Numbered from the stretch's first letter, positions 13,915 through 43,500 are shown. The stretch: 64,000 nt of DNA from Pocillopora damicornis (GCF_003704095.1 NW_020847187.1:372001-436000); one strand, 5' to 3'. Numbers and translations are program-made. Notes: a model not told the origin generated them from the letters alone.

Positions 13915-14050
13915 CCCCTGCACGTGACAAACTTTCTGGTGACTCACGCACGACGGTGCCTGGAAACGAATTTTTGACGTAAAAAAATTCTAATATGGCG
14001 CGCGAGAAAGCGAAACGTGCACCATTCCGGAAGTTAGATTTAATTAAAAC
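13915..14050 (+). promoter_or_regulatory. CpG-rich putative housekeeping promoter of the SLC46-like gene
   Basis: E-box CACGTG (13921), YY1-like aatatggcg (~13992) and ETS CCGGAAGT (14027-14034). A donor gag|gttagt follows at ~14146, then a CpG-poor gene body. Confidence 0.45.
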
Positions 14051-15908
14051 TGTTGAATACGACAATTCAAACAGGTCATTTACGATTTTCATCGGAGATA
14101 TAACAGTGTTCTTTTCATTTATCTCTCGTTACAAGAGGGACAGAGGTTAGTATAATTATCTTAAGTCATGTGATGTGTAATCTACCTGTGAAACTCACTG
14201 TCGATCTCATGACGACCGCAAGATTTCCTCTATCACTCCTCAGTTCTGTAGTTGTGGTCGGGCCCAGGCATAGTGTAGTTCAAAGGCTGTGTTGTACGAT
14301 ATCGTAAAAACCTGACGTTACTGCATTGCCAATTCCTCATCGTAGTATCTCAAATTATTCCTCAACGCCATGAGTTTTATTCCACATAATATGCTGTATG
14401 TATGGTATCCTAAGAGATCCCACATGATCAACTAATCACAAGATACCCACACAATATCACATGGCCTCTTGCAGTATCAGAGGATCGTAAAAATTCACTG
14501 CTGACTATAAATCATACATATCGCCATTTGGGGATTTGAAAAGGAAACACTGTAGTGGATCGGAAGGTTACTCAACCATTTACAGAGGTAAACAACAACT
14601 TTTTTGTGGGAGGAGTTAGCTTAAGGCCTAGTGGACATACTCTACTCATGAGTCACAAATACTGAATTTATCTCTTGTCATTAAGAGAGAAAGTGAGAGA
14701 ATCTCATGGCAGATGATTGTGATATAATTTAAATTTCATTTTCTGTTACAGTGCTAGGCAAGTCGTTTGCCTTCGTTCAGTCAGACTCCAAAGCATGCTA
14801 TTCAATGTCCTTTTAAGATAAGGATGAGTTTTAGAATTTGACCTATTAGACTAAAAATCTGAAGATTTCATACTAGATACAAATTGCTCTGATGTAGGCA
14901 CAAGTTAGAGTTTTACTTAAAACTACCCTTTTGTAAAGGAGACGTCAAATCTGGTTAATTTTGTTGCAACTCAGTGAGGGTCATTTGGTGCAGCAACATA
15001 TTAGTAATGAGATTTAACTTTGGGGTCATAATTGTCTTCCTGCAATTTCTTTTGATTCCATGGACATTTGTACCTCAGCATTGCAGAGACAGAATCAACC
15101 AAAATGAACTTATTTAAGAAAATGGCTGAGAAAGGGGGTCCTGTGCATGTTTCACACCTGTCAAAAAGTAGTAATAATGCATCACCAAAAATTGGGTAAA
15201 CAAGTTTAAAGTTCACATATTGTGAAAAGCAAAAAAAAAAACAGTTCACTGGGGTTTTAATTTCATATTTTCACTGGTCATGAAAATTAAAACACTTGAT
15301 CCTACAACAGGCAATGACCCCTTTCCCCCATTCTAAAAACGATCTACTTTGTCCAACATAAAGAACACGCTGTGAAAGAAAAAATCTGCTAAGGGGGATC
15401 AGGGGAATCCAACCAATTATCATTTTACATCCTTTGGAAAATCTTTTACAATTGGTTGGTAACTCTTCCCATCTGTCAGTTATCAAAACAGTTACTAAAA
15501 CAGTTACAGTAATACACAATTTGCTTGAGATTTTAATCAGTTGGGATGAAGCTGGGAGTAAAGCTACACAGAATGTCCTTAAGTGGGATTGATATACTTA
15601 TGTATTCTCTTGGTCATGTCATCTGATTGTCCAGGTGAGAGTAGTCCTGAAAAGGAATGTTATTGGAAGCATTCACTGATGTTTCAACAACCTGACTCTG
15701 ATGACAACTTTGGACCCATGCCACTCTCACTTGGACAATTAGACTACATTACATGTACTAACTATTATATGTGGGGTCACACTAGTTCCTACATTATCTT
15801 TTCTTTACACACATTTTCTATCTTTTTTTCCTGCAATTGACACTGCTTTTCTTTCAAATTTATCTTTTTTTACAGGGTTAAGTGACTAATCTGCTGTAAG
15901 TAAAGAAA

Positions 15909-18900
15909 ATGGTGAGGTATTGGCCTGTTATAGAGCTTCTTTCATTTCTGAACTTTTTTGGAACAACTCTGTTGGACATTATCACTCAAAAATACATCTA
16001 TGGCAGTTCAGTGAAAGATCATGCAGATTTTGAGAGACCCAATTGTTGTAAAACATTGAATAATGCTACCTGTGGTGGTTTAGAAAACCCTGGCCTCATT
16101 TCAGCTGATAATGATCATTGGTTACTTTATATAAATTTAGTGTCATTTTTGGTAGCAATGCCATCAACAATAATTCTTGGAATCTGGAGTGAGACTGAAG
16201 GACGCAGAAATGTGTTGGTTGCTACCTTGATAGGCATTGCCTTACGTGCAGCTTTGTTTACCATCATTATAAAGTTTCAAGCACCGTTGTACTTTTTTGT
16301 GATTGCTAGTCTGATGACAAGTGCGGTGGGATACAACACTAGCTTCATGGCATCATGTATGGCATATACTGCCGATATTACGAGTAATGAACAAAGAACT
16401 TTGAAAATTATGTGCTTAGATTGTGCAGCAGGGATTGGAATTGGCTTGGCTTATTTTATTAGTGGGTTCTATTTGGAAAGTCAATCTTTCTATGATATCC
16501 TCTGGCTTATCATGGCTATTATGGTATTTAACATTTTATGCGTGATCTTCCTACTGGAAACAAATGTCTTTACCCACGAACTTACTCCAATCTGCAGATG
16601 CAGTGATTTTGTGGGCATTTGGAAAATTTTCAGTCATGATCCAGGAAATGGTCGAAGATGGCGCCTAGTTACATATAGTGCTGCACTATTTGTTGGTGGA
16701 GTGGTTTTTTATGGGACAAATGATCTGATTCTTTTTCATGCCCAAACATATCTTTGTTTTACTCTGATCCTGTTGGGTTTCTTATCTGGTGCTCTAGCTC
16801 TGCGATATATTGTAAGCCTGGTCTTTGTTAAGTTGTTTCAGACCATCTTAAAAATGGCCAATAACCTGATCATTGAATCTGGTTTACTGTCCCTTTTTGC
16901 TGGTCTTATTGTGGCAGTATTTAGCAGGACAACACGTTTTTTGTTTATTGGTAAGTGTTATAGCACTATCTATTGAATTATAAATGCATTCTGATTGGTT
17001 CTTACTTAACCTTTTAACTCCCAAGATCTGATTGCGAATCTCCCCTCTAGCTGCTACATATTTCCTTGTCTATTGGTTATGAGAACTTGGTGCTATATCA
17101 AGATAACAGCTTCTACATGATCAGTTTGAATATTCTCATTACCTGTTTGTTGAATAATGCATGAATGTTATAGGGAGAAGTTTTATGTTGATCACTTCTG
17201 GAAGTTAAAAGGTTAATATCATTAATATGATAATAAATAAATATAGTTATAATAATGTTTATATGATAATAATATGATACACACTCAACTGCACCTTGTG
17301 TGTCACTTTTTTGTTCTTACCACAAATTGATGCACAGCTGTGATCTATTACTATTACTATTTGTGAGATACATAATGGTATCAATTGTGGCTAGTCTAAC
17401 CTTCTAGAAAATTCTGAGTTTCTATTATGGATTCATATGCCTGGTATTGAAGAAATGTCCAATTGTTGTGTTGAATACATTACAATCCTCTTCTTGCTTT
17501 GCTTTATGTTTAAAAGATGTTGGTTGTAACTGGTTAAAAAAATGTCATTTTTCCTTCAGTTCCTACTACATTTGATTTTTTTTTATCAAAAAAATTGTAA
17601 TTTGAATTTATTTATATGCATTCTCCAAATAATGATTTAAAAAGCACAATCATCAAAGGCTTAAAGTGGATTCTGGTCAGTCTTGTGCTTGATATGGTCA
17701 TGACTGTACATCATTCTATAAATATTTGTATTCACAACCTTTGGAAATAATATTCTAAAAAAAATCAAATATGAGACAAGCTATTATTTCTAAGATATAG
17801 CTCAGCGCTCCAAGCTGGGACACATAACAAGCTGTAGTGTTTTATGACTGGGTGTTTATAAACCTATAAATTTAAAGTGGGATAAACAATTGTACAAATG
17901 CTATGTAATACTGTTCAAAATATTGTTACGACAGCTGGAATCTTATTTCTGGGGACCATTTTAACAATTTAAGGTTGCCAATGGCAAGTTGGGCAGAAGC
18001 CCAATGTATATATACTAGGTATGTAGTATGTGGTATAGTAGCCCAATGTATGTATTAGGTATGTCTCAGAAAGACATACCTAATTGATAATAGGGCTCAC
18101 TTATGATTCAGTAGTTTCTACTGGTATACTTATTAATAAACTTTTCCTTTTTTTTATCAGTTCCAGCATTTCAGTTTTTAGGTGGCATGCCATTATCAGT
18201 GATGAAAGCCAGTTTGTCTAGGCTGGTAGAACCTCAGGAACAGGGTAAGATGGAATAGAACATTTTTTGAACATGCCACATTTTTTTTTCTTAAAATGCA
18301 AAAAAAAAAAAACACGTGACAAACACTTGGTATGCAATACAATATATATAGCATTAACATATAATAACAACTTCAACATAATAATACTTTTCACCAGTTA
18401 TAATGTGTTACTTTAACCAAAGTTATGTGGCACATGTTACTCCTTACCACATCTATTTTGAATTCTTACAGTGTTATATTTATAAATTAATATCCTGGTA
18501 TATTTATTATTTACTTACTCAGTTACTCATTTCTCTACTGTTCAATATCACTACTCACTTCAATTTTTATGAATATATAATTAGTACTCTTTTCTAATGG
18601 TTAGAGCTTTGGTTAAAAGTTTTGAAGATTATTCTCTTGTAGAGACTGAAAAGTGAACATGTACCCTTCCCTCTCTGGTAAGGGATGTAAAGACAGAACT
18701 AGAGAGAGTGGTGAAAAATACCCCACTTTTGCTGCCCAATTTAATCAAAATTAAAGCCAATAGTGTTGACCTAGTTAAAATCTTTAGGTTGTAATAAAAC
18801 TTATTCTCTGTCCACCATTTGTTAACTTTAGTTTGAGAAAGGGACTTTCCCTCTTCAATAACCACAGCCACAATTTGCTATAACTTTTATTTCTAAAGAA

Positions 18901-21042: not shown

Positions 21043-22437
21043 CTACCACGCCCCAGCGTATTTTTCTCTGGCTTCTTGAACCTTAGCTGAATGTGTAATT
21101 TTGTGAGGTTCTATTTGCTTTCGCTCAACTGGCTTGGGCCGAAGTTTTGGAAAATATGAAAAGGTAAAAGATCTTGTGAAGGAATTGTCTAGAACTACTT
21201 TGTTGTAACTATCCCATAGAATTCGATTACGTTCCCGCTGAATCTTAGCTTCCTCGATTCTCCTTTGTCTATCCCTGGCTTCTTTTTCTTTCCGTTCTGC
21301 TTCCATTTTTCTTATTTCTTCGAGGCGTTTCCTCTTCTCCTCTCGCTTTTGATTCCACCTCTCAGCAATTTTCCTCCTCCTCGTGTTTTCCCGTTCTTCT
21401 TGCAACTGAATGTCCATCTCTCTTTCCTTTTCTTCGGTAAAAGTCAACGCGCGCTTGACATTCGCAGCGTGTTCGTTCAAATTCCAAAATGCCAACTCTG
21501 TTATCAAATGTTTAACTTGAATTTTTTCAATTTCTAAACCACGCTTCTCTAAAATATTGTCACTTCTGGAAACAACCCGTACGCGTTTTCGTTGAGCAAC
21601 ACCCTTCATCTTCGCCTCTTTATGAGAAAGATCTTTCTTCTTTGAATTTATCGAAGTGTTATTTATTTTTCCCCTTTCTTGTTGCTTTTTAATTGTACCT
21701 TTATTGCACTGTGGATTTATTTCGTGAAGTCGTCGATTTTCACGTGTCTGTCTCAAAGTTTTCCTTGCATCCTTGACGATTTCTCTAAAATTGTTTCTCA
21801 AAGCGCGTTTCTTTTCTGTAATTTCTTTTTCGGTCTCTTGCGGTTTATCAGTCATACTTACTAACTCATTTTCATCTACTGATAAATCACTCAGCATGTA
21901 TGGACTCGAACAGAATTTGGAATCTTCTTCACAGTCAGTGTGATCACAGAGAATGGCGAAAGGAGTTTCCACAGATGCTATGCTCGAATTGAAAAGCATA
22001 GTCGATAAACTATCCACAATAACATTTCCGCTGTTACAAATGGAACCGTCAGCACTTTTGCAACCCTCTGTACTTTTTGATTCCTCTTCTGATTCAACAA
22101 ATTCGTCCTCTCGTCGGTTCACGCGCTTGAACTCACTGTCCGTGTAGTTGTGAGTACTAGAGTAGGAAGTCGAGGTTTCAGTTTCAGTTCCGGATTCAAA
22201 CAATATTGATTGCCGTGATGTTCTATCGAGATTACAAGTAGCATCGCCGCAAATTGTTGGCTCGTTAAGCAACATTTCCGGTAACGTAAGAGAAGCAAGT
22301 GAACTGTTACGACTAAGGTCGATGTTTAAACTTTCCAGTCGTGATCTAGAGTGAGTCATACTTTCCGTATCTCCGTCATAATATTCTGTTAAAGCTGAAA
22401 GTTTTCTGCTAGAAGATGTCGATGCTGAACTGGACAT
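21043..22437 (-). CDS. Uncharacterised intronless coiled-coil protein, array member 1 (464 aa; Ser/acidic disordered N-terminus, E/R/K helix, C-terminal FTRSFTFSYFP)
   Basis: Long ORF; 22497 is GTG and the first ATG is 22437. AATAAA follows the stop immediately. Shares motif blocks with the three paralogues. Confidence 0.85.
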   Translation of the reverse strand: MSSSASTSSSRKLSALTEYYDGDTESMTHSRSRLESLNIDLSRNSSLASLTLPEMLLNEPTICGDATCNLDRTSRQSILFESGTETETSTSYSSTHNYTDSEFKRVNRREDEFVESEEESKSTEGCKSADGSICNSGNVIVDSLSTMLFNSSIASVETPFAILCDHTDCEEDSKFCSSPYMLSDLSVDENELVSMTDKPQETEKEITEKKRALRNNFREIVKDARKTLRQTRENRRLHEINPQCNKGTIKKQQERGKINNTSINSKKKDLSHKEAKMKGVAQRKRVRVVSRSDNILEKRGLEIEKIQVKHLITELAFWNLNEHAANVKRALTFTEEKEREMDIQLQEERENTRRRKIAERWNQKREEKRKRLEEIRKMEAERKEKEARDRQRRIEEAKIQRERNRILWDSYNKVVLDNSFTRSFTFSYFPKLRPKPVERKQIEPHKITHSAKVQEAREKYAGAW

Positions 22438-22579
22438 ATCGACTAAAGCCGGCTGGCGACTCAACTCCGAAGAGGTAAACTGCGACCAGTTTCCCACTGA
22501 TTTGTTTTTATACTGAGCTTGAACATTTCCTAACGGCCACAGATGTTGGCATCAAAAGCAAAATTACAAAATTACAACT

Positions 22580-23930
22580 TTATCGCAGCCGGATCACAGG
22601 TGTAATTTCGCTGTGACAAAGGAACAGTTTCATTTTAAGAATAGGAAGGACTCACGTGTGTTGTTGAGGTTTTGTGAAAGAAGTTTGTAGGCTCCATAGC
22701 CTTGCTTGTGCTTTCGTTCAATATATTTTTTTTCTTATCCTCAAACCTTTACTGGTAGTAGTGTAGGATAAATTGATTGCTTTTATCGGTGCTGTGAACG
22801 TAACAAAGTACCCCTTTGTAATGTGAAACTTCTCTTTTGCTCAGATTCTTTATTCACTTTATAGAAGACGTGTCGATCAGTCGATGATCGCGCAAAGCTG
22901 TTCATAATTGATCAGCAAAAGCAAAACAAAACAAGATAATAAAAAGCAACCTTCTTATTTTATCCGTTTGTTATGTTTACGAGACCTGCGGTTTTTTTGG
23001 GTTTTTCTTGACAACTGCTGAGAAAATGTCGATAACTACTTAGATATCCATTATATACGAACATGTTTGATTATGATTTGAAAACAAACTTTTAGAATGA
23101 ATCAACATTTTTTTTTTGTTTTTATTTTTTTTCCTCGGAGACTGAATCAGAATTTTCAGTTGAAGAACGTTATCGTAAAAATCTTATCACTTTAGGCATT
23201 GCTTGATTGCTGGACAGGCTTTATCTATATTCACGCTTACAGAATGAAGACTCCGCAACTTGGGTTATAATTTGCGCGCAGTTATGCCTTTTAATTTATT
23301 AATGAAACCGAGAACTATAAAAAAGAAAAGACAATTCAGTTGAATTATCTGTAACCCTTAGAGAAGATAAAGGAAACAAGAAATGGATAAAAAACCTCAC
23401 TGGATAAATGAATGAAATGGATAAAAAAACCTCGCCTCATTGGTTCTATCTTGGATATCACTTAACCATGTGAGTGATAATGTAACACAGTCAGACTATG
23501 ATAGCACAACCTGTCTCATTTATCTCATTAGGTATTGATAAAGGGTTGTAAGATTCAACGGAACGCTCACAACAGAAAACAATTTGGCTGTTTTTGAAGG
23601 AAAGGACTCAGTAATAACCCTCTTCCCCATTCCCCCATTTTCCTTTTCCTGAAAATAATTGGTCAGGTATCAACATTCAGTTTGTATCATCATATCATCA
23701 TATCATCATATCATCAAAATAGAACAATTTTTTGCCATCGCTTTTAAAAATGCTTTCTGCAATCTTTGGGCTAGATTATGATTTTGAATTAAAAAATGAT
23801 AACGTAAAAAAAATTTAAGCTTTCAACTTTTAGTCATTTTCATTCAATTATCATCACAGTTTTCTAGACACTTTCTATCTCATCCAAGTTCAATTTTATA
23901 ATTGATAGCACTACGCATTTCTTTATCGGC
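22580..23930. promoter_or_regulatory. Dense GATA-motif cluster in the divergent intergenic region
   Basis: About 21 GATAA/TTATC pentamers counted by eye in 1.35 kb, plus (TATCATCA)4 at 23685-23716 and a duplicated gaaatggataaaaaa..cctc at 23380/23414. Confidence 0.45.
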
Positions 23931-24201
23931 TGACCCATGGCGGTTGAATGTTAAATGAATGCAGCAGCTGCTGGCAACTGATTTTCTTTAGGGAAAACAT
24001 CCCAGTGTGAAAACTGAGAAGCGAGGCCCTCTATTATTGCGCCTCGCCATGAGCAAGACGGCTGCGTAGCCCTGCACAGTCGGACTGTCCTTCCCAGTCT
24101 CCCCGCCGAAAATACTTGTTGCTGAGAGAGAAGTCGCTCTTATGAGGTTTATGTCTTAAACAACAGAACTAAAACATTCCTTCCAGAAAATCGCTTCCAG
24201 A

Positions 24202-24636
24202 ATGAATCAGATGGAACATAACTACAAGATCAAAGACTACAAGCGTTATGAAGCTCCAGGGCCGTTCATTCGAACCGGCTATCGCCTGAACTATCCGCAA
24301 AACTACCCAAACTCACAAGAAACGCGGAGAATGGAAGAACGATTCCAAACAATACAATGGCCTCGAAACAAGACGCTCGTCGGTTTGACCGACCAAGGAG
24401 ATAGAATGAAGTTCACAAGAGATCAACAGATAAGCGTATTGACAAATCAAAGCGAAATGATTGCTGATGTGCAACATCAAAGACAGGTTCTTCTCGATAC
24501 AGTCAAACGAAACATTCATGTTGCTAGGGACGAATTTGCTCGTGATGTTTACGTTGGCAGACCCGGTGTTCGCGATATGTTACGAGGCACTCAGCCGCTC
24601 TACAAGGTGATCAACAATGGGACACTCTATGGCTAA
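24202..24636 (+). CDS. Uncharacterised 144-aa protein (Y/P/R-rich ends, central helix), single coding exon
   Basis: ATG-initiated ORF with coding-like composition, preceded by pyrimidine-rich acceptors (ttccttccag, cttccag) and followed by an AT-rich 3' region; no family recognised. Confidence 0.7.
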   Translation: MNQMEHNYKIKDYKRYEAPGPFIRTGYRLNYPQNYPNSQETRRMEERFQTIQWPRNKTLVGLTDQGDRMKFTRDQQISVLTNQSEMIADVQHQRQVLLDTVKRNIHVARDEFARDVYVGRPGVRDMLRGTQPLYKVINNGTLYG

Positions 24637-25472
24637 GGATTTATTTGTGAATTTTATGCTTTATTCTTAATTTTGACATCTTATGGCATTTTTTCTTTTA
24701 TATTTAAGTATCGCATCGAACAATGCGAATTTTTAAGAATTTTTACAGTTTGTCTATTATTTGTTTCGGTGAGGATACATGGGGTAGACTCGTTCTGTTG
24801 TTTAAAACGCCTTTTTGATATACGATGAAAATGTAGAAAGCTAGTTTAGATATCAACTTTTAAGCTTGAATTAAAATTCTGAATATTTGAACTCGCTATT
24901 TCCATGAAATATTATTGACTGAAAATATTGTGTGGATAATGATACTTTATTACAATTTTGGTGGCATTTTGTATTTTTTTTCTTCCACAAAATCAGCCGT
25001 TAGATTTTTATGTGTTAAAGATATAGTTTTATTTTGCCTCAGTTTCCATTTCAGTGAGAAGGTTTTTCCCACTTACCAAGAAATTATTTTGTATTTTTAA
25101 TCTACCACATACATGCAAATGTGGTTGGTGTGGTGAACATTAAAGCAAGATTTTTCACCTTATAATTATCGTCAATATGGTGTTGCCCATAATGTACTTA
25201 AGTTGCAAACCAGTAGCGGCCAAATCATCCCTCTAAGGGATGACTCACCTGAAGCAAGCATCCCATTTACGTATGAAATATAGCCATTTATCACATGTCT
25301 CTCTGCCAGACTGCAGAGTAAGGCAGAACTCAATGAGATCTCCTGCCTGTAAATGGGAAACTTAAAGTAAGAAAGGGAAAATTGAGTGAAAATCTGCCAT
25401 ACTCTGCAGAAAGGTCTCTGAATGATAGCAATCTTCGCAATTAACACTACTTAAAAAGAAGTGAAAATAAGA

Positions 25473-25543
25473 CCTGAAAAAAACTCAGGCCTGTACGGGA
25501 TTTGAACCCATGACCTCTGCAATACCCATGCAGTGCTCTACCA
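25473..25543 (-). mobile_element. tRNA-derived SINE head (pseudo-tRNA)
   Basis: Minus strand tggtagagca (A box)...ggttcaaatcccg (B box) then caggcctgagttttttt; no intact cloverleaf acceptor stem. Confidence 0.7.
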
Positions 25544-27406
25544 GACAGGTCTCTGTTGATTAATTATCATGGGCAACACATCATATTTATCATGAAACAT
25601 ATTCTTTGCAGTTAGTGTTGGTCATTAATCTTTTTACTGGTAGATCACTGATGGGTACAGAGCATTCAGTGTTTTGCCATAACAAATAGCTGCTTTGTGG
25701 GAAATGAACCATGGCCTTCCCTCACTCAAGAAGAGAGCACTTCTCCTTTGGAAGGAACCAAAAGCACAATCTAAAAAGAAGTGGGATCAAACATAATAAA
25801 AATTCGGAGGATTTTTAAAATCTGACCCAGCAAATGCTAGAAGCTAGGTGTTAAGCGTTTAGCACCTGGTATTTATTTATAAACTTCTTTGAGTCAGGGA
25901 ATGTTGGCTTATAATTATTTTTTGGGTGTGTGTTAGAAACTCCCACTTCTTTTCACTGCTCTGCTGCCTCCTGCACCCTTGACTCCAGTTTAAACCTACC
26001 CTTAAAGTAAAGGATATATGGGTGATTGCAATTAAGGATTTCTCTCCCAATTTCTGCTGTCATCAAGTTGTAACTTCTTGCCCCTTCATCTCTACTCAGC
26101 TTTTTACCATATCTGTATGCCATTTGTGATTTATTAATGAACAGAGCAATGCAACATGGAATCTGTTAAGTGGAGGATATGGATTTAAATTCCCAAACCT
26201 CATCTATGATTATAGACCCAGCATGCCATTTTGAAAATGTTTTTTTTGTATCACTTTTGAATTATTACTTATTATTTTTGAAAACATGAAAGGAGATTGT
26301 CTTGTAAATCTTTTTTTTTTTTTTTTAACACCGATTTTTAACATGCCGACCACAGCACTTGTCATGTTCCATCCCTGAGCAAGGTGCTTGTTGACCATCA
26401 ACCCGAGCCATCGTTTAAACGCGTCAGCGGTCCCCTGCTCCCGATTTCCAAGATGGCTGATTGTTCAAGTCCTTAGCATACTGCAGCTACTCCATAAAGC
26501 ACAGTTTTAAATATTCACCAATACTACTGAAAATATGATTGGCACTTGATTTTCATTGTCAATGCAAGGGTAAAATCTCCTTAAAATGAACACAGGAGTA
26601 TCACTCAGGAACTTTGGACAACAACATTCTCCCTGACGCGTATCAAAATGTAAGTTTATGTAATATACCGTGTAATTAATACAGCCGTTAAATATGCACC
26701 ATGTGCTTACGTAGTAAGTTTGTATTCCTCTTTTGTTGCTTCCTGACTGCTGATACTCGAACTTAACTTCAAGGGAGGGTGGGGTCAGGATTGATCCAGA
26801 GACAAAAGATGGATCATCAGTAAACATGAAATGATGTTATGGGTGTGTTGTGGTGGTTTACTGAAACACATTCCTGAGTCTGAAAGTTAGCGACGAAGCA
26901 GTCAACTTGAGCATTTTCCCCAATCCCTTTGAGTTATACAGTTGTTTTTTGTTGATGTGCCTGCACGTTCTCTTTACCAACAGACATTATGTTATTTAAT
27001 CTTTAATGAATAGAAATGAGGCGAGAAAGTGTTGTAGCCATAATACTCCATTGACTATTGTCCTATGTGCTTACAGCTGGTTTTCAGTCGATAGCGTTAT
27101 GGAGCGTCATGCAGTACTTACATTTTGATAATTTTAATTACTCCTATTGATATGATTTTTTAAAAATACTGCTGTTGCGAAAATTTACCCTTTTCGACAT
27201 GCAACTAATCAAATTACTAAGCTGGAGGATGATTTTACTCCTGGCTGTCGCTACAATACAATGCAAACGTAATACACAGATTTTCTTTACACATTCGGTG
27301 AAGTTGGTAACGTTTTCTGTACTTTCTTTCTCTTCTATATCATTACATAAACTATCTATTTTTTTTAATTACTTATAAACATGCATGAATTATCATTTAA
27401 AGCCAT

Positions 27407-27672
27407 TTTCAATAGACTGTCGAAAGTCATCGGTCGAGAATGCTGTGGTTTCTCTTCCTTTGGTCCAAAAAACTCGCGTTACCCTCTCAACAAATTAGAT
27501 ACAAGCCTATTACCGATCACGACTTAGTCACCCTCATTTTCCCGCGCTTTGGGAAGTTTGCTTGGTTTTAGTTGGAGTTATCATTGATTCCTAAGGGAAT
27601 TTTCGTTTCTTCTGAGAGTCATTTTGATAACATTGGTTTTCGTTTTACGACTCGCAATCGAAAAGTACTCTG
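27407..27672 (+). mobile_element. Non-autonomous interspersed repeat; related inverted copy at 46565-46790 and fragment at ~1720-1870
   Basis: ttttcaatagactgtcgaaa...cgcaatcgaaaagtactct ends; internal actcgcg/ttttcccgcgc segments are mirrored at 46565-46790 (ttttcgacagtcatttagaaatg). Confidence 0.5.
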
Positions 27673-27908
27673 AGGTATGAGTGTAACGGTATCTTCGTAA
27701 TATCAATAAGGAAGAACTCTGGTCTTCCCACAAGCGATTGACCACCAAATCTGTCTGTACATTAAAGCCTTAACTCATAGTCTAATATGACTAAATGAGC
27801 TACTTATTTTAGAAGAAAAACAGCTGGCGAAACGACGAGGCTATGGAATGCATATCCCACTCGCTTGTCTTATGTTGCCTGTTAAGCTGAGATAAAAATG
27901 AATTTAAT

Positions 27909-29072
27909 TCATTTCTTCAAGGAAGGAAAGTATGAAAAGCTAAATGGTCTTGATACGCTCGTGTTAAACATTGATTCTTTGAACATCTTTTTCATAGCCA
28001 TATCACGTGCCATTTTCTTTAATTTGGCCATCTCCCGTTCTCTCCGTTCCTTTTCCTCTCTTTCTTTCTCCAGCCTTTCCTTTTCTAATCGTTCCAATTC
28101 TTTTCGTTCCATTTCGGCCATGCATTCTTTCCGAACTTTCTCTATTTCGCTTTCCACGAGCATAGAGACTTTTTTCTTAGCCTTCATTTGATCAGCGTGT
28201 AACTGGTTACGGAACTCCATTTCCGAGTCTTCCTTTCCTTGGAGGGCGTGTGTGAGATCAATGGCCGCTTGGGTTAATCCCAAAGAGTGAAGTTCCACAA
28301 TAATCTTCTGTACTTCCTCAGCTCTCTCCAATCTTTTCACCTCATGCTGCAGAAGGTTCGCCACTTTCGCTTTACCGTTTACCGTTGTCAACACAGCAGC
28401 GAGACTATGTTTCCTTCTTGCACGCGCTCGATCCAGTTCGGCTTGAATCTTCCGGAGAGAAGCGAGTTCTTCAGAATGCGCCTTGCTTCTATCGCCATAC
28501 TCAACTTCTTTACCTTTCTCTTCTTTTTTGCGCTGTGCTCGCTCTTGCATTATTCTAGCCTGCTGCTTACCTGCTCTTTCTTCCAGCCTGTCGATAGAAA
28601 CTTTCTCAGCTTCAATCCGTGTTGCAATAAGTTGTGACCTCGTATCTTCAATTACGACTTTAAATTTTCTTCTCGTTTCATTTCTTTTTGCGGCAGCTTC
28701 GTATCGTAGCCTCGTCAGTTCTTTTTTCAACGTTTGTTTAGCCCTTTGGCGAATTTCCTTTTCAGCAGTCGCAGAAAGTTTTATCAGATGATATTCGTCA
28801 TCAACGTTTTGTTTGGGCTCATCTTCGCCATCTTTTCTCCCGTTTCGTTCTTCGTCCTCGTCTTCTTCTTGAAGCGCCATCTCGTCAAGGTCACTGTCGT
28901 CGTCCATCTCGGGGGTGATTGAGCTAGCGCTTGTGATGAGAGAATGAGTTTCTGATCCCGTAAGACTTGAATTTCTCTTAGTCCCTTCAATTTTTGGTAA
29001 AACAATGCGAACATTGTTGTGGAATCCTGTGACCGCATCGTCTTTGAATCTCTTTTTGTTGTGTGGTTCCAT
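27909..29072 (-). CDS. Uncharacterised intronless coiled-coil protein, array member 2 (387 aa; ends VSRPFSFSYFPSLKK)
   Basis: ATG-to-stop ORF; clear paralogue of 31012-32211 (LRKIQxxLDRARARRK shared). Confidence 0.88.
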   Translation of the reverse strand: MEPHNKKRFKDDAVTGFHNNVRIVLPKIEGTKRNSSLTGSETHSLITSASSITPEMDDDSDLDEMALQEEDEDEERNGRKDGEDEPKQNVDDEYHLIKLSATAEKEIRQRAKQTLKKELTRLRYEAAAKRNETRRKFKVVIEDTRSQLIATRIEAEKVSIDRLEERAGKQQARIMQERAQRKKEEKGKEVEYGDRSKAHSEELASLRKIQAELDRARARRKHSLAAVLTTVNGKAKVANLLQHEVKRLERAEEVQKIIVELHSLGLTQAAIDLTHALQGKEDSEMEFRNQLHADQMKAKKKVSMLVESEIEKVRKECMAEMERKELERLEKERLEKEREEKERREREMAKLKKMARDMAMKKMFKESMFNTSVSRPFSFSYFPSLKK

Positions 29073-30821
29073 TTATACGACAAAAATGTCGCTTCGAGTT
29101 TTTGTCAACTATTGTGTTGTATTACCTCAGCGCAAAACAACTAGGGAATTCCAAAATGGTACAATCCGTTTCTTTGATGGCCAAAAGAAATCTTTTTAAG
29201 GTGGGTACATCTAGTAAAGCTTCAATAGTACTTCCTTGTTTATCAAGTTTTTTCGTGTGGTCGCATTTCTTTCTCTAGAACAGTCCGTTTCCTAGATAAA
29301 GCAACTTCCAATTAAGATAACATCATGGCTCTGAAGTAGCCTATCAGAAACTTCTTTTATCTGGTATTAGCACGTCACAGCGATATCGACAGAACTGCAA
29401 GGCCCATTGATAGAAGATTTGGAAATTATTAAAGCGAATGACTAATTTCTTGCCGCGTGTTTTTATTGTTATTGTTTCGTGTTTGGATTAATAATTCATA
29501 AATTCTGTACGAAGAATTTATTAATTTATAAGCTCACTTTATATGATAAAATCTTAAAAATGATTATCAATGTTACCAGAAGCTTACAACCTGATGTTAC
29601 CTAACTATTGGGCATCACCTGTACTTCTTACCCATCTTAATAAGTTAGAAGAAATAGGGGGGAAATTATTTTACACGTGAAATCTAAACTTTTCCAGCAG
29701 GAGGCATAAGTTTTTAGCTAGGGTTTAGAGCTCACGCATAACATCATAGTACTGCGAGCTACTTTGATTGCAGGAGCATCGGGTGAGGATTTCAGTGATG
29801 TTTTTTACTACCCGAATTCGAGTCATCAGTAATGATAGATTGCAAAGATTGCGGCTATAGTCAAATACTATAGGTATTCATTCTAGGTAGCAGCAGTAGA
29901 GCCATATCTACAGATCAGAATGATGATGGGGATGAAGACGAGGAGAAGAAGTTTATTAGAATGGCACTCATCAAAACCTGTCAGTGTGGCGTTTGCGTCG
30001 AATTTCTTAAGTTGTGCTGACATATTTGCTTTCCAATAGGCGTTTCTGGATATTTGCCCCCTGAATTCGCGTTCAGAACGTTCGGCATGCACAGGTGAAC
30101 TGTAAATGAATGGATATCACGATTTTACAACTGAGTAAAATTGTCACCTTGCGATCTCATTGTGTTGTTGTTAGCTTTGTCACCTTTTTTGTGACAACAC
30201 TTTCGGCTGTACTGGTTGTTGAATATCTTTGCGAGAAAGTTTTTTACTATAAACTGGCCTTAAAATAGAGTGTTAGGTGATAATATATCGAGTATTTTCT
30301 TTCGACGTCAAAAACTTACCTTCAACATGATTGATAAGATTAAAAGAAAAAGAAAATAAAATATAAAGGAGGTGCTGTACAAAAACAGGGATAGTAGACT
30401 GGTCTGGATGTGTTTCAAATGACCAACGTGATGCGGCGTGCCTTCACTTTTTTACTTCTTCCTTGCTTCTGCCTCTTCTTTGTTTCAACAACTCCATTTT
30501 ATCACGACTCTTGTGTTTCTATCATGATCAGGGACTCGCGTGTTTAATTATAAAAAAGTTGACTTTTTTCTCTCTAAACTAGAGAGAGAGAAACGGCATG
30601 AATAATATCGTTCAGTATTTAAACTAACCTCTATTTCATTTTTATCGAAATGTTTGGTCGTGTTTTGTGAAAAACTATTTTTAAATGAAACGCGGTTTTT
30701 ATCATCGTTTTGATAATAAGTTATCAATATGATCTCGAGGTATATAGGTGGTTTAAATACTCTGACACTTTTTTTGTCATGATTCACAACACACAATCTG
30801 CTCTCAGCGTTTTGTAAAGTC

Positions 30822-30862
30822 TGTCACGCAGCGCTGGAGGCGGGACTGCTGCGTTGCGTGAC
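30822..30862. repeat. Short hairpin-type interspersed repeat
   Basis: tgtcacgcagcgc ... gcgttgcgtgaca inverted arms. Confidence 0.55.
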
Positions 30863-31011
30863 AGCTTTTGTACCGGTTGTTACCATAGTGAACTCCTTCG
30901 TGTGGTAAAGAAGATTCTGGTACTCGAAGTTTTTCCACTGATGTTTACCGATCAACGAATCATTCCGTAATTTATTCATTATCAGACGGCTCATGGTAAC
31001 TCATGTAGTTA

Positions 31012-32211
31012 CTATTTTCGTATGGGAGGAGGAAAAAAAGAGAAAGTGTGCGCTCTTGAAATTCGTGAGGTCAGTTTAGTTTGATCAAAACTTCGCCTGA
31101 GCGCTTGATTATGAGCTTTTCTTGCCAGTGCCGCCATCACTCGCCTACGTCTTTCTCGCTCTTCTCTCGCCTCTCTTTCTTGTTCCAGTCTCTCCACCTC
31201 AGCGATCCTTTTTTTGCGTAACTTCTCCACCTCCTCTTCCTTTGTCTTTAAAGCCTCAACGCGTGCTTTATTTCTTTCTTCCTTGAGCTGATGGCGTAGT
31301 GTAATGTCAGCTTTTTCTTTCGACTGAATTGACCCACGTAAAGAATCAGCCTGCTCATTTAACCCAAGATCAACCAGGTCTTGAATCAGGTTCTGGATTT
31401 CGTCGATCCTCTCAAGTTTACGCATCTCTGTTTGCATCATCTGCTTTATTTTTCCTGCTTTCTTTGCCTTCAGGATAGAGATGAGTCCAGTCGAACTCTT
31501 TCGTCTTGCCCGAGCTCGATCTAAATCTGATTGGATTTTTCTCAAGGCAGCCATTTCCTCGACTTGTTGTCTCACCCATTCATCACCACCTCCAAAGTTG
31601 TGCTCTGGAATTTCATTCCCCTCTTTTTTGTTCTTTTTGTTCAAGATTTGCCATTTCCTCAAAGATCTATTCTTCATTATCTCGCTCTGTTTTTCTTCTG
31701 CTCTTTCTTCCAACTTGTTAACAGCCTCTTTCTCTGCGTGCACTCGAGCTTCTATCAGCATGTCGCGAGCATTGTCAATAACCTTAGTGAATTTCTTTTT
31801 TATTTGTAACTCTTTTAACCTGGCATTGTGCCAAATCTTTTTGAAATCTTCTCTTAGATTTTCTTCGACTCGATCCTCAATTTCTTGCATGTCTTTTTTA
31901 GAAAGCATATAATTGTCTGCCCGTTTATTAGAAGACAGTTTTGCATCGCTGCGAAATTCATCCAAGTCGTCGAACGAAAATTCCGAAGTCGAAACACTTT
32001 TTTCGTCTTCATGACTGTTACTGTTAGAAACAGGGGACAAACTATCCGAGTCGCCGTAAGCAGAATCAATACTTGGCAGCCCCAAGCTGCTGGTTTTCCT
32101 TGTATTTCCTCGATAAGTCTCCTGGATTGTATCCAATCTTTCGAAAGGATTTCCTCTTGCATCTGACTTAAAAATATCGACCAGAAACGGTTTATCGCGT
32201 GGAAACGACAT
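31012..32211 (-). CDS. Uncharacterised intronless coiled-coil protein, array member 3 (399 aa; ends ISRAHTFSFFPPPIRK)
   Basis: ATG-to-stop ORF; aligns along most of its length with member 2. Confidence 0.88.
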   Translation of the reverse strand: MSFPRDKPFLVDIFKSDARGNPFERLDTIQETYRGNTRKTSSLGLPSIDSAYGDSDSLSPVSNSNSHEDEKSVSTSEFSFDDLDEFRSDAKLSSNKRADNYMLSKKDMQEIEDRVEENLREDFKKIWHNARLKELQIKKKFTKVIDNARDMLIEARVHAEKEAVNKLEERAEEKQSEIMKNRSLRKWQILNKKNKKEGNEIPEHNFGGGDEWVRQQVEEMAALRKIQSDLDRARARRKSSTGLISILKAKKAGKIKQMMQTEMRKLERIDEIQNLIQDLVDLGLNEQADSLRGSIQSKEKADITLRHQLKEERNKARVEALKTKEEEVEKLRKKRIAEVERLEQEREAREERERRRRVMAALARKAHNQALRRSFDQTKLTSRISRAHTFSFFPPPIRK

Positions 32212-33880
32212 CGAGTTCTTTCAATTGATAGTGCTTGCTGATCGTCAGTTCTCACCCGGCTTTCGACACGAAATCAATAAAAAGAAATTTGTTCCCTAAT
32301 TACATGCGGTTACTATGTTATATGTTATAGGGACCTCGCACGGCGCTCTCATTCTTTGAAGTATAACCACACGAAACTGAGAGACGTGCTTGATGTTCTG
32401 CGATGATAAACACTACCTTCAGTGCTATCATTGCCTTTGGCTTATAACTATTTTTGGCCTTGTTTTTCGTGTCTGAGCAATCAAGGACTTGATAGGAAAC
32501 TCGCGATTGGAATCGTATCCCAGAGTCCAAGTTCCAGAAAAGTAAGTATATCGACGGATGTTTTTAAAAACTTTTATTTCATTAGTGTCTTCGTCTGAAA
32601 TATCTTATCAATGTTTTCAGCCGTATTTACTTTAAGAGCACAAAGAACCTCATAACTTAATAATAAAGCGGTTGACGATTCGCTTGTTTGAAGTATTTTT
32701 ACAGCGACCAAACGAAAAACAATAAGATCAATAAAATTCTACAAATAGAGAGAATCTACGCTGTCAAAGTTAACAATAGAACCTAGACTAGTATGTGTCA
32801 TTTCCTCTTTATGAATCCGTTTCTGCCGTTCAAGTTGTTTTGTGAGTCAAAATGATTTGGAACTGATTTAATTTTTTTTCTTTCCGCTTTCTTTTCTTTC
32901 GGAGGTAAGTAAGAAAAAGCGAAAGCAAGTCGTGTAGATGGTAACAAACATGGTGGGAAAAAAGGGAACCCACAACGGCACTTGTAGCACGAAGTGATCT
33001 ACAACCGTGACTTTGTAGTCCGGATGATGACTCTACCTCGCTTAAAGATTTGCGTCGAAAGAGATCACCTAAGGATGAAGTCAGTGAAAATCCTTCAATG
33101 GTGGTCTTAAATTGTTTATTTTTCTTTGTATTTTCTTCACTTATTTTCCTAACCCTTTCGTTTTGAGCTCTGTATACAAAAATGTTCAGTCTTATATGAC
33201 TTTCGTGAGTAGGAATGCATTGTTCACTTTTTACCTAAGCTCATGCTCCAATTGTTCAAAGCGCAGATGCTTGTATTTAGTCCGCAAAAATTAGGGTACA
33301 GTGAAATAAAACTAACTGAAGTGCGATGTACAGTTTTATACTCCTTGTACTCGACTCTTGGGTTATCAATGTAATTGCCGAACTTGCTGAACATTTCCTG
33401 TTTACCGCGGTTATCGCGCGAAACAGGATCATGTTTCTTCTTTCCTGCGCTTGTCGTTGGATACAGATTTTCCAGCGCTATGATAGGCCTATTTTTACTC
33501 GCACTGCTACTGACTTACGTGTTTCCCGCAGCACTACCAGGAGTTTTAATAAAACCCGGTTATCAGCAGTCTAGCACCCCCCCTAGAAGACTTCATACCG
33601 CCATCTGTTTAGCCTGTGAGCTTGCCCTCGTATTTAGGATGCGCTGTGCGACTCCTTTTCTAGGCACAACCGCCTATTACACCATCGGCAGCTGCCTGTG
33701 GAAAAAGTTATTGAAAACCCTGTACTACTGTTTAGTTTTCCTTTCTCTTCAGTGTTGTCTTCCTATTTTCCCGCTCAGTTCCTTGAGCGTTATTCTAGAT
33801 ATCATTGCTAAAATCAATGCTTGCTCTGATTGGAACCGGTTGTACTGTCAGTTTTTTTTTTTTTCAACAAACGAACTGGT

Positions 33881-35362
33881 TCAAGCTGATTTACTTAACT
33901 TTCGGCTCTGCTCAGAATGTGAGGAGCAGATGGCCCGATTTTTGCCCTTCTTCTTCGTTGACACACAAGAACATGTCGAATTTTGGCGGGAAAGACTTCT
34001 GTCGCTACTGTCGCTGTCCTCACTGCTTGACTGCTCATAGTCAGGACAAGCAGACCCTGATTCGGGTATATACAAAGGGAAATACGAGAATTTAAAAGCC
34101 CGTGATATCTTTGCGGATAGTAAAGCCTTTTGCTTTTCATACAAAAACGCAGTGTTTTTCTCTCGTCGTCGTAGAGCCTCTGCCCGTCTTTTCTCTCTTT
34201 CACGCAGTCTACTCTCTCTCATCTCCTCCTCCAACCTCTCCAGCTCCTCCATTCTCTGAAAGAAAGTCTCTCGTCTGTTTCTCTCGATATTTCTCGCCTT
34301 TTGACGGTTTTTCTCGTCTCTTTCTTCTTGAAGTTCCCGCTTGATTGCTTTGTTCAACTCTTTTTCTGTCATAACTTTAGATTCCAGAAGGTCAGTCAAG
34401 TTCTCCGCCTCTGTTTGTTTGTTCAGTTTGTAGAGTTTTCGTATGGTTTTTTTGACAGCTTTAGTCGAATTTGCCGGCTGCGAGGTATCGCTCTTACGCT
34501 GTTTTAGGATGCCTTTTGGTGGTAACCCATAACCTTTGAGAGTATCAACAGGCTTTACATCTCCATCAGAAAACCTGACATCTTTCTGTTCCTGAGTCGA
34601 CTGTTCACTCATCTCTAGGCTAGACACTCCATGGTTCTCTTTAGTTTCTGTTGCCAACAAGTCGTCTTGCTTCTTGTTTGCATCTTGACAAGTTTGGTTT
34701 TCAGCGGAAGATCGACGGAATTCGGCGGATTCACTTATGGAGGACTCACTATTTGGTTTCTGCAGTCGCTTTCCAGTAAACTCTCGTGATTTTATCTCGT
34801 AATCTTTACGCTGAACGGAACGTTTTTGTCTTTCAGTTCCTTGTCTATGAGTTGCTGAATCTTTATCGCGCCTTTTTTTCCCACTTCGCGATGTAGTGGT
34901 TTCTTGTTTTTGTACGATTTCTGCTTGATGAATGGTTTCTTTAACAGCTGTTAATTGTTTCTGTAACTCGTTCTCAAGCACACGAATGCGATCTTGCAGA
35001 AGCTTTGAAACCTTTAAGGATCTTTCGCGAAAATCCAAGTTCCTTGTTGTGTCAGTTTTCTCAAGCTGTCTTAAGTCTGAAAACGACACCAAATATTTAG
35101 ATCCTTGGACGTCGGGTAGTTCTAAACCGTCCCCACTTTTTCTCGTTTGTTTACCAAGTTCAGGAAACTCTGAGAAGCTTTTACTCGGTTCCTGTTGGTT
35201 TGGAAGATGAAGTTCGGCGTTTATTCGAGGCAGAGCCGAGTCAAAGCTGCTGGCTCTTGTGTAGACATAACTTCCGCTGTGCTCACTGTCTGAAGGGAGC
35301 ATACTGCCCACAGGAATCTCAACTGGCTGAGTTTTAGACGCGGAATGAACTGAAAACTCCAT
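33881..35362 (-). CDS. Uncharacterised intronless coiled-coil protein, array member 4 (493 aa; ISRAFKFSYFP plus Ser/Cys-rich tail)
   Basis: ATG-to-stop ORF; shares VKKTIRKLYKLNKQTEAENL, ELQEER and the aromatic motif with the paralogues. Confidence 0.87.
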   Translation of the reverse strand: MEFSVHSASKTQPVEIPVGSMLPSDSEHSGSYVYTRASSFDSALPRINAELHLPNQQEPSKSFSEFPELGKQTRKSGDGLELPDVQGSKYLVSFSDLRQLEKTDTTRNLDFRERSLKVSKLLQDRIRVLENELQKQLTAVKETIHQAEIVQKQETTTSRSGKKRRDKDSATHRQGTERQKRSVQRKDYEIKSREFTGKRLQKPNSESSISESAEFRRSSAENQTCQDANKKQDDLLATETKENHGVSSLEMSEQSTQEQKDVRFSDGDVKPVDTLKGYGLPPKGILKQRKSDTSQPANSTKAVKKTIRKLYKLNKQTEAENLTDLLESKVMTEKELNKAIKRELQEERDEKNRQKARNIERNRRETFFQRMEELERLEEEMRESRLREREKRRAEALRRREKNTAFLYEKQKALLSAKISRAFKFSYFPLYIPESGSACPDYEQSSSEDSDSSDRSLSRQNSTCSCVSTKKKGKNRAICSSHSEQSRKLSKSA

Positions 35363-40500: not shown

Positions 40501-43500
40501 CGTGGTTTCTTCAGAAGCTTGGCTTTTGAGATGAGAGCAACTTTGCATTCCTGTAAGGCCAATAATTACAAGATCACAGCCATGTTTCATCTCTAGACCA
40601 AGTACTTTAACTGAAGCACGAGTTGGCCAGAGGTATTCTTTGATGTAGAATTGAAGCGATTTTTCCATGTTAAAGTTTTTTCAGTATACTGAATAGTGGA
40701 GATTATTATTGGTTTGTCGGAGTTCACGAATGCTTCTTCAGCCATAGTCGTAAGTATATTTGCTTCGGAATTGTCAGTTCACCACGTACTGTAATTATCT
40801 TGTACTTGATCTCTTTTTTAAGTTCGGGCCTTCGAATTCGTAGACGAATTGTTTGTCAATGCATATCAGTATTTTGACAATTTTAGTGAAATGCAGTTCT
40901 TTTTTATGTATGTATTTGGCCAAACTAGGAAATAATAGCCCCGCGAATATGCTCGTTCCAACTTGAGAGGTTATAAGTTCCCGCCAAGATAAGTAACAAT
41001 GCCTCTTAATGTAAATTAGGAATGAATGTGAACAATCGAACTTTTGTTTTAAAAGACAAGAAGACATAGAAATGTGACATCATAAAGGGCGTGCAATTTA
41101 GCCTGTCATTTCAGAGAAAAAAAGAGGCGAAATTTTAGACTGTTAGATGTTAACATGTTTTGGTATCTAAAGACAGATGAATAAATTTTAGTACCGGTTT
41201 GTCACGGTTCACAAAAGTCCGTTAAAACGATTTTTTGTGCGAGTACATAGCATTTGTAACGGCTGAATCGTAGGGACTACCTGTATTGTTCAACTTTATT
41301 TTGTTCCTACACAATAGTTAAAATTCCCTCTGCTGACTGTTTGTTCTACACCACGCTTTGCGTAGTTTTGATAGTTTTAGCCAGCATTGTAAATGCCTGT
41401 GAAATTTAGATTTCTGAACGTCTTCGCTTCAAAAGTGCCGGAATGTAATGTTCCTGATATCAATGATCGAACGATCATCAATTAACTCAGTTCCAAATGA
41501 AAATTCCGCTCACGTTCATAATGACGAAGCCTCGGTATCTTGTATTCAACTGCAGCAGAAATTGACTGTCTTCGAGAATGGTAGCTTGAGTGATAAACTT
41601 AGTTCTTTCTGATTTGCAATTATGAAGAGGCAACCAAACAACTGTTTTATTTTGCAGGGGAGAGAGTCAAGATCAGGATTGCTATTGGATTCGCTGCCAC
41701 CTGTGCTGTGCTTTTATTAGCAATATTTATAATATTGTTGTATAAGGTGCTATGGTTCCGATCCAAGACCGGAACTAAGACCGACGTCGCCAGAAAACCG
41801 TCGTCAAATGGTGTACCAGTGCGACGTGCGCCAAGCCCTGACGACCAAGACTTTAAAAAAGGTCGCCGACAACGTCGGCATCAACCTCTGATGAGATCCG
41901 ACAGCTCTGTGTCCGAAATCGACCTCGATTCGTGGTTGCATAAAAACAACAACCGAATGTCTGCTAATGAATCAGACAGCAGCGAAGAAAGTCTTAAACT
42001 TGGAAAGTTGGAGTTTAACATAAACTACGATACTAATAAGGAATGTTTACGAGTGTTGGTGTTAGCGGCGTACGGTTTGCCGACTATTCACAGTACGAGC
42101 TACGTGGAATTGTACTTGCTACCCGACAGAGTTGAAAAGCACCAGACTAAAGTACACTACTCTAATAGCAATCCTTTTTTCAATGAAGAATTCGTGTTTG
42201 ATATCGCCTTTTCGGAACTTGCTGAGCGCACCTTACAGTGCTGTGTGTTTAGTTACGATGGATTTTCGCGACATCAATCCCTAGGGGAAGTTTTTTATTC
42301 GTTTGGCGAGAATGATCATTTGAGTGAGCACGGAGGAGTAGCATTATGCAAAGAGATCATGAGAGATGCGTCTCTGTTAAAGGTGAGATGTTCATTTTGT
42401 TAGCTCATTTTTATGGCCAGTCTTGAAGCTAATATCTAAAGCAAACAAACTGAATTGAGGCGCCTACGTACTGACAGCCCCACCCTTCTGATAATAATAG
42501 GACCAATTTTCTGTGTGGATGTTGGCTTCATTAGTCTAATTCATAATAACACCTCCATGGTAAAAACCCGGGAGCGATATGTTTTTTTTTAATCGTGTTA
42601 TCACTGAGTTGGGACGAAAAGTGTCCGAGTTGTGGTTTGTTTGTGGTTCGCACCATAATACGAGAAGAAATTTTCGAGAACTGAAGTTTCTGTAACTCCA
42701 TTAACTATGCTTTTTTCTTCGCAGTATCGAACTTTTCTTCTTTTTCATTGAAAAAAAAGTCTGTTCAAGTGTTGCTCATTCTCGTTACACTGATTTTATT
42801 CTTCTTTCCATACCAAGGAGGATAGTCCATCCCGTGCAGGGGAGGTGCTAGTGTCACTTTGTTACCTTCCCACCACCAACAGACTCACATTTGTTGTCCT
42901 AAAAGCGAGGCTTTCGAAAACTTCATTTCCAAATGATTTGCCACGTGAGTACAATTTGTATTTCAGTTGGAAAAAGATTAGTGTTTGATTTAAAAGAGTA
43001 GTCTTCTCTGCTGTTCGAGCACGCTAGAATTTGAATTGAAAACTGACTATATTTATTGAAGTGCAAGGCTGTCACAAAAATGCAATTATTCACACAGGAC
43101 AACGCACCGTGCGCGAATGCATTCATGGAGCTTAAACTCGTTTCCACAGTTTCCCTTCAGCTCGGGAGCGAGGTGGTTCAGACTCCAGTTAAGACAGAAC
43201 GCGAAGGAAACCTTGGTAAAGTTTCCGTAGAGCCCCATACAATTGTAAAACAAATCTGTTTTCCCAATGGAAACGTATTGTTTCTGTCACTGTTTTCTCT
43301 ATTCAAGAACTGAATGTATAATGTAGTATCGGGCTGTGCGGAAATTTTACCGAAACCTTTTTTCTTCGATTATAGGAAAGTCTTTGGCTATTTTAGCATA
43401 TAATTGAAAATAAAATGGTATTCTCCGTGCAAAGTTAATGGATTGTTAAAAGGTAGAGACAGTAATTTAAATTTTAATTAGTGTCTTATCAGATCTATAC

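Follow-up and report, generated by a model that had tools for sequence, protein, structure and literature searches.

A tandem group of four coral genes from an old, constrained and undescribed cnidarian family with a conserved aromatic tail

We identified an old, constrained and undescribed family of cnidarian proteins in a 64,000-nucleotide stretch of the Pocillopora damicornis genome (GCF_003704095.1, NW_020847187.1; our contig C3822:372001-436000). This stretch is hereafter called the window, and coordinates are counted within it. The family is real, and its four members in the window, designated M1 to M4, lie close together on the minus strand (Table 1). On balance, we favor the reading that they are four ancient paralogs of an unnamed cnidarian family with an architecture of head, rod and docking module. 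In such an architecture, the head, which is disordered, rich in Ser/Asp/Glu and provided with a small LPx[IM] site, would probably be phospho-regulated, and long E/R/K-rich alpha-helices in the middle would act as a stiff rod or spacer. The end module of ~35 amino acids (aa) consists of a helix with an invariant Asn followed by [ST][RK]-x-aromatic-x-[FY]-[ST]-[FY]-F and usually by Pro and basic residues. It would serve as a portable docking element by which the rod is anchored at one of its ends to a common partner, and the divergent heads would provide a different cargo or regulation for each paralog.

An earlier reading of the window by a model (the original prediction) had described a tandem array of four co-oriented, intronless open reading frames (ORFs) with unalignable N-termini, sharing five ordered blocks (A to E), the last of which is a short aromatic motif. 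The four ORFs were found with the predicted lengths and positions, and blocks A-E and the four motif strings were present as quoted. A C-terminal module of ~135 aa is common to all four proteins and its end follows the pattern [ST]Rx[FH]xFS[YF]FP; in M4, a Ser/Asp-rich tail lies C-terminal to the motif. A GTG located 20 codons upstream of the M1 ATG would give a protein of 484 aa, and M1 orthologs share the start Met of the shorter frame. Other parts of the description required modification. The array does contain four genes, but an unrelated gene lies within it on the opposite strand (24202-24636). Absence of introns was supported by RNA contigs for M2 and M3, and is indicated for M1 and M4 by an ORF that has no interruption here or in two other coral genera. 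The N-termini of M2 and M3 proved alignable, and the LPx[IM] site is shared by all four heads.

In BLASTP comparisons, M2 and M3 aligned over their full length (32% identity, E 3e-43). M1/M3 (E 3e-8), M4/M3 (E 1e-4) and M1/M4 (E 1e-4) aligned over the last ~130 aa, and each of these partial alignments stopped exactly on the motif. Judged by these alignments, M1-M4 are paralogs by common descent and not proteins of shared composition. We built a family profile (A2) from 26 family members and compared it with the genome (234.35 Mb, 4393 contigs). Exactly M1-M4 were recovered as full matches and nothing else; their E values (1e-89 to 1e-127) refer to sequences which are all rows of the profile. 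Each of the four has blocks A and B, a charged helix and the terminal motif [ST][RK]x-aromatic-x[FY][ST][FY]F.

A hidden Markov model search of 1.84 billion representative proteins identified 70 proteins at E<=1e-3, including sequences from Nematostella and Actinia, and no match was longer than 1000 aa. The nearest relatives of the array genes were stony-coral sequences. Each of M1-M4 had a separate set of orthologs in other stony corals, located on shared contigs, and the order M4>M3>M2>M1 was kept on contigs of two other coral genera as intact single ORFs. For M3, 55 relatives were found by word search, and identity ranged from 73% (Oculina ortholog) down to 40% in Nematostella. M1 was 51% identical to its Oculina ortholog (ACROYT_G007246). 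M4 matched a partial Oculina model (63% over 45% of M4) and sequences of Desmophyllum (50%) and Porites (41%). The Oculina models ACROYT_G007246, G007249 and G007250 are located on one chromosome, which suggests conserved linkage. Nematostella contains a tandem pair, a 377-aa single-exon gene with a 418-aa one-intron member 5 kb away. Two further Nematostella members (709 and 406 aa) share this chromosome, and their accession numbers are nearly consecutive. XP_032232938.2 and XP_001628862.1 are among the Nematostella members of the family.

More distant relatives had a longer form. A 988-aa protein, which we take by its identifier ('Seg2052.3 ... GoldUCD') to be a gene model of the jellyfish Aurelia, and three relatives of 633-685 aa contained block A, a 'DR-RARK' block, block B and the end motif, arranged on both sides of a long insert. 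In a phylogenetic tree of the modules (maximum likelihood, quick method, rooted at the midpoint only), M4-type sequences formed a clade, the M1 clade was placed next to the long anemone proteins, the M2/M3 clade included two Nematostella genes, and jellyfish sequences formed a separate clade. Since anemone genes nest within the M1-type and the M2/M3-type clades, the paralog types predate the split of corals and anemones, and the age of the family amounts to hundreds of millions of years. The tree and the gene order thus agree with the earlier suggestion of an old family. The accompanying suggestion that it is unannotated was half right: NCBI models exist, but there is no Pfam family. The model names are 'hypothetical protein', 'trichohyalin' or 'calponin homology domain-containing protein DDB_G0272472'. 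In the papers searched, none of six accession numbers of Nematostella members was found.

The four genes are under purifying selection, which is strongest on the module. Ratios of nonsynonymous to synonymous substitution rates (dN/dS) were calculated by the NG86 method against the nearest other coral genus (L014; dS 0.56-0.84); synonymous sites were saturated in comparisons with a more distant genus. For whole genes and modules, respectively, dN/dS was 0.22 and 0.13 in M1, 0.14 and 0.07 in M2, 0.13 and 0.11 in M3, and 0.35 and 0.19 in M4, all well below the neutral value. A strict form of the motif, [ST][RK]x[FYWH]x[FY][ST][FY]F, was scored on 114 full-length relatives from word searches and was kept in 109 of them. 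Four of the other five were one residue off, and a single protein (P0055) had a wholly different end. Conservation of the motif in orthologs and the module dN/dS (0.07-0.19) bear out the predicted purifying selection on this element.

Transcripts, whose absence would have spoken against the original prediction, were found for M2 and M3. Three studies with four libraries (poly(A)-selected or RNA) provided RNA contigs that covered both genes collinearly, with no joint within either coding sequence. M3 was represented by one 1692-nt contig (30564-32255) and additional pieces down to ~29533, and an AATAAA is located at ~29512-29517, near the transcript end. In each of the four runs, little or no RNA was seen on the ~250 bases between the M3 and M2 units (29282-29532). 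This silent gap argues against DNA carry-over and places the M2 start ~190-210 nt upstream of the M2 ATG. RNA contigs at 32849-33268 may correspond to the 3' untranslated region (UTR) of M4. As a separate observation, only ~250 bases lie between the apparent poly(A) site of M3 and the apparent start of M2, making these very compact head-to-tail units, and the interval includes a TGACGTG site resembling a cAMP response element.

The proteins had been proposed to be rod-like coiled coils. An AlphaFold2 model of M3, computed with alignment A2 (mean predicted local distance difference test, pLDDT, 72.6), supports the rod-like part of this proposal with long helices after a disordered head (Table 1); the coiled coil itself is unproven. 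A crude Fourier test of the 110 aa before the motif detected no 3.5-residue (heptad) hydrophobic peak. The E/R/K content of M1-M4 was 31-37% overall and reached 68-75% in 40-aa windows, and the charged helices contained many opposite-charge pairs at i/i+4. Given the lack of a heptad peak in this crude test and the highly charged 40-aa windows, a single helix of the ER/K type is at least as likely as a coiled coil. ER/K single alpha-helix spacers resemble M1-M4 in E/R/K content, i/i+4 pairs, the lack of a heptad signal by the crude test and predicted helices of ~100 residues. They are a structural style and not a family, whereas the array proteins add blocks A and B and the invariant aromatic end; the 'LRKIQ-DLDRARARR' block is an addition of the M2/M3 type beyond plain ER/K helices. 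A Foldseek search of the PDB with the M3 model returned only generic long-helix proteins. The best of these, SH3BP5 (E 6e-3), was dismissed as meaningless at a TM score of 0.2-0.3.

We further searched for the tail on other gene bodies. A degenerate DNA pattern for the motif gave 447 hits in the whole genome compared with ~500 in a reversed control and was uninformative. It was replaced by a module-only profile (A3), which included a terminal exon on contig C2137. Profile A3 recovered M1-M4, the C2137 exon (E 2e-24) and tails on contigs C2193 and C1562 (Table 1). The matches of C2193 and C1562 are independent of the profile, and both genes have Lys/Arg-rich tails after the aromatic motif and no Pfam match. 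In the C2137 gene, a Lys/Ser/Pro-rich upstream exon ends in an E/R helix which is a weak match to DUF4670. The terminal exon contains an E/R helix with the end ..RLTKAFTFSYF (..SLSQRLTKAFTFSYF). The upstream donor and the terminal acceptor are in matching phase, and their joining would give an unbroken charged helix. Alignment of the family profile to the terminal exon by hhalign gave a probability of 92.8% (E 3.8e-7 over 22 columns).

Beyond cnidarians, the search of 1.84 billion proteins gave weak hits (E 2e-4 to 6e-4). One is the sturgeon gene LOC131737653 (P0170/P0185), a spliced gene located between MYRF-like and CNOT2-like genes, whose product of 146 or 241 aa has an end of the ..LNKPWVFSFF type (..TLSQRLNKPWVFSFFTNIP). 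Others are unnamed short Lys-rich proteins (P0172, P0175, P0176) ending in ..ISRPWTFSYF-YVPP-K. The hhalign probabilities of these proteins against the family profile were 92.6% and 94.6%. Like the array module, these sequences have a short E/R helix with the conserved Asn, the aromatic end, and then Pro and basic residues. Unlike the array proteins, they are 80-241 aa in length and are without blocks A and B; they are just as uncharacterized. The sturgeon tail resembles that of C2137, whereas the C2193 gene is the one that the Lys-rich proteins resemble. What the array genes have in common with proteins of the C2137, sturgeon and Lys-rich types is at most the end module.

Because the same tail is found on unrelated bodies (three other genes of this genome, the sturgeon gene and the short proteins), it behaves as a portable module. 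The idea that the motif is a docking element gained support in this way, and the non-array carriers are the best support for it. They also agree with the similar KIAA2012 end proposed in the original prediction. A bolder proposal, which we consider doubtful, is that the ~35-aa end is an ancient and so far unrecognized docking module of animals. It would occur in the array family, in a KIAA2012-like gene and, as far as vertebrates, in small Lys-rich proteins, and would target all of them to one conserved structure, e.g., the axoneme or the microtubule lattice, with the array providing interchangeable adaptors. A microtubule- or cilium-associated structure is our leading guess for the shared partner, a weak and tentative one, since it comes only from the unproven KIAA2012 lead discussed below and from the combination of aromatic and basic residues in the tail. 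In proteins with a TPX2/WVD2-type end (PF06886), the contact with microtubules is made by a short Ser/aromatic/Pro motif that comes after a charged helix. They offer a lead for the mechanism of the tail, but this family had no match in M1-M4 at E<=1.

Several points weigh against the head, rod and docking-module reading. The E value of the C2137 exon is circular because this exon was already included in profile A3, and hhalign support for the non-array carriers spans 22-76 columns, partly of biased sequence. The aromatic tail of M3 was modeled with low confidence (pLDDT 54-61), and direct evidence for transcription is limited to two of the four members, M2 and M3. A scan of the window for RFX X-boxes detected no enrichment (19 matches versus 14 expected), and none of the matches was at the four promoters. 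Finally, nuclear proteins could equally well have such basic tails and acidic, Ser-rich heads.

The alternative that survives best, although we regard it as unlikely, is that M1-M4 belong to the uncharacterized KIAA2012/DUF4670 family as divergent, shortened members and act in the axoneme like KIAA2012. Human KIAA2012 was located in the cilium compartment of motile ciliated cells in a tissue-imaging study (bioRxiv 10.1101/2025.03.18.643967), a result that bears on the array genes only if they are linked to KIAA2012. In a hair-follicle proteome, KIAA2012 was listed by name only. A six-frame scan of the genome for DUF4670 gave a single hit, on contig C2137 (29.7 bits, cut-off 27, profile positions 328-390), and none in the window. 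This hit is 4.3 kb upstream of the tail-bearing terminal exon and on the same strand, and the matching exon phases, with the continuous E/R/K helix they would yield, and the hhalign score of the terminal exon also favor a connection. Like the array proteins, KIAA2012 is an E/R/K-rich helical protein, and the C2137 gene may be its coral counterpart.

For the array itself, the DUF4670 link suggested by the original prediction was not borne out. Using hmmscan, PF15709 was absent from M1-M4 (E<=1), from ten longer relatives (E<=0.1) and ten short relatives (E<=1), and from the C2137 terminal exon (E<=10). The C2137 upstream exon, a strongly biased stretch, scored 18.1 bits (E 0.0019), below the cut-off, with DUF4670 still its best Pfam hit. 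No protein of >1000 aa was found in the 1.84-billion-protein search, and thus none of the size of human KIAA2012 (1181 aa). According to the original prediction, KIAA2012 has a putative ISRPW-YSYF-type motif at its end. In contrast to the spliced C2137 gene, the array genes are single-exon genes for proteins of 387-493 aa, and any homology is limited to the terminal module. The weak DUF4670-like exon of C2137 keeps KIAA2012 as a lead for the array family, although an unproven one.

A nuclear role is the main alternative to a role at microtubules or cilia. M1-M4 might be nuclear or nucleolar scaffolds. Their charged helices and basic tails would then either contact nucleic acid or function as nuclear localization signals, their acidic Ser-rich heads would correspond to phospho-regions of the CK2 type, and a nuclear protein would be the docking partner of the aromatic tail. 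The high E+R+K content described above is in agreement with this. Most carriers have basic residues after the motif (for example ..PSLKK, ..PPPIRK and, in C2193 and C1562, K/R-rich tails), and these fit as well, as do the Ser/Asp/Glu-rich heads and M4 tail. However, Pfam detected no nucleic-acid-binding or nuclear domain, and composition alone is weak evidence. We consider nuclear scaffolds somewhat less likely even than divergent KIAA2012 relatives, and the present data do not separate the nuclear from the cytoskeletal reading.

Comparison with known families gave little else. No Pfam family matched M1-M4 at E<=1, including TPH (PF13868) and MAP7 (PF05672), and nothing relevant was found in Pfam for the 20 relatives or the additional motif-bearing exons. 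A PDB sequence search with the family profile gave no match, and the matches of the C2137 exon (best E 0.039) were taken for chance. In the ESM Atlas, M3 and the C2137 exon scored 0.75-0.81, the level of shuffled sequences. It is very unlikely that M1-M4 are structural cross-bridging proteins like trichohyalin, a mammalian hair-follicle protein. NCBI names Nematostella and Actinia members 'trichohyalin' or 'trichohyalin-like' and their E/R-rich helices are similar in composition, but the name reflects composition: S100/EF-hand domains were absent from M1-M4 at the same Pfam threshold, and the N-terminus is predicted to be disordered, which contradicts membership in this family. A literature search for 'trichohyalin' together with Nematostella returned nothing specific. 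Lack of introns and much low-complexity sequence might suggest frames that are open by chance, or retrocopies in decay, with the motif as a leftover; this is already refuted by dN/dS far below 1 at unsaturated dS, by intact ortholog frames in many corals and anemones, and by poly(A) RNA on M2 and M3.

The family identified here, unnamed in databases and constrained in order and sequence since before corals and anemones split, is a clean case of strong unexplained constraint. This constraint is centered on one short aromatic tail, which is also found on unrelated proteins, including one from a vertebrate. Should this tail serve for docking, identification of its partner would provide a first function for several 'hypothetical' or 'trichohyalin-like' genes and possibly for human KIAA2012. 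Even without a valid link to other animals, this would be a well-documented cnidarian-specific family.

Table 1. Positions of the array genes, their modules and transcripts, parts of the M3 model, and tail-bearing genes elsewhere in the genome. Positions are those of the window unless a contig, locus or residue range is given.
Feature	Position	Strand	Description
M1 coding sequence	21043-22437	minus	uninterrupted ORF, 464 aa from ATG
M2 coding sequence	27909-29072	minus	uninterrupted ORF, 387 aa
M3 coding sequence	31012-32211	minus	uninterrupted ORF, 399 aa
M4 coding sequence	33881-35362	minus	uninterrupted ORF, 493 aa; most divergent member
M1 shared C-terminal module (blocks B-E)	21118-21540	minus	motif TRSFTFSYFP at 21148-21177
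M2 shared C-terminal module	27912-28331	minus	motif SRPFSFSYFP at 27924-27953
M3 shared C-terminal module	31015-31416	minus	motif SRAHTFSFFP at 31030-31059
M4 shared C-terminal module	34043-34471	minus	motif SRAFKFSYFP at 34076-34105
M2 transcript	27500-29281	minus	poly(A) RNA contigs; 5' edge near 29257-29281; 3' UTR extends past 27500, the edge of the examined stretch
M3 transcript	29533-32255	minus	RNA contigs; 5' edge near 32255; ~1.5 kb 3' UTR
M3 model	residues 1-97		disordered
M3 model	residues 105-196		helix (block A)
M3 model	residues 207-249		helix ('LRKIQ-DLDRARARR' block)
M3 model	residues 268-281		helix, then turn
M3 model	residues 285-386		102-residue helix
M3 model	residues 387-399		aromatic tail, non-helical, pLDDT 54-61
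C2137 gene	contig C2137 ~11136-17012	minus	exons L010:4836-5414 (open frame to 5468) and L005:1501-2466
C2193 tail	C2193:682239-682394 (L020:781-1743)	plus	321-aa Lys-rich open frame ending ..ISRSYSFSYFNIIPPYKRRK..; A3 E 3e-6
C1562 tail	C1562:64135-64239 (L021)	minus	short terminal exon ending ..VTRPFTFSYFPEIHIKKKKK..; A3 E 0.004

The gene that interrupts the array, a 144-aa ORF on the plus strand between M2 and M1, is unrelated to the array family and had no match in Pfam or PDB. Another coral genus has an ORF at the corresponding position (L014:3775-4209), and the two proteins are 97% identical. With dN 0.022, dS 0.50 and dN/dS 0.045, it is far more conserved than the flanking array genes and looks like a real, unnamed small gene.

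Further long ORFs in the window include those for a Myb/SANT-like DNA-binding protein (4931-6061, minus strand) and an MFS transporter (15909-16976, plus strand), a C2-domain exon (41708-42403, plus strand) and a gene for a PX-domain protein (44460-45569, minus strand). The MFS gene adjoins the M1 ortholog in another coral genus as well. Between M3 and M4, one RNA contig at 32541-32905 (run X2, depth 3.4, 30-nt side) leaves out 363 bases whose borders read GT..AG on the plus strand, the strand opposite to the array genes. It may represent an antisense or non-coding spliced transcript, or an artefact.

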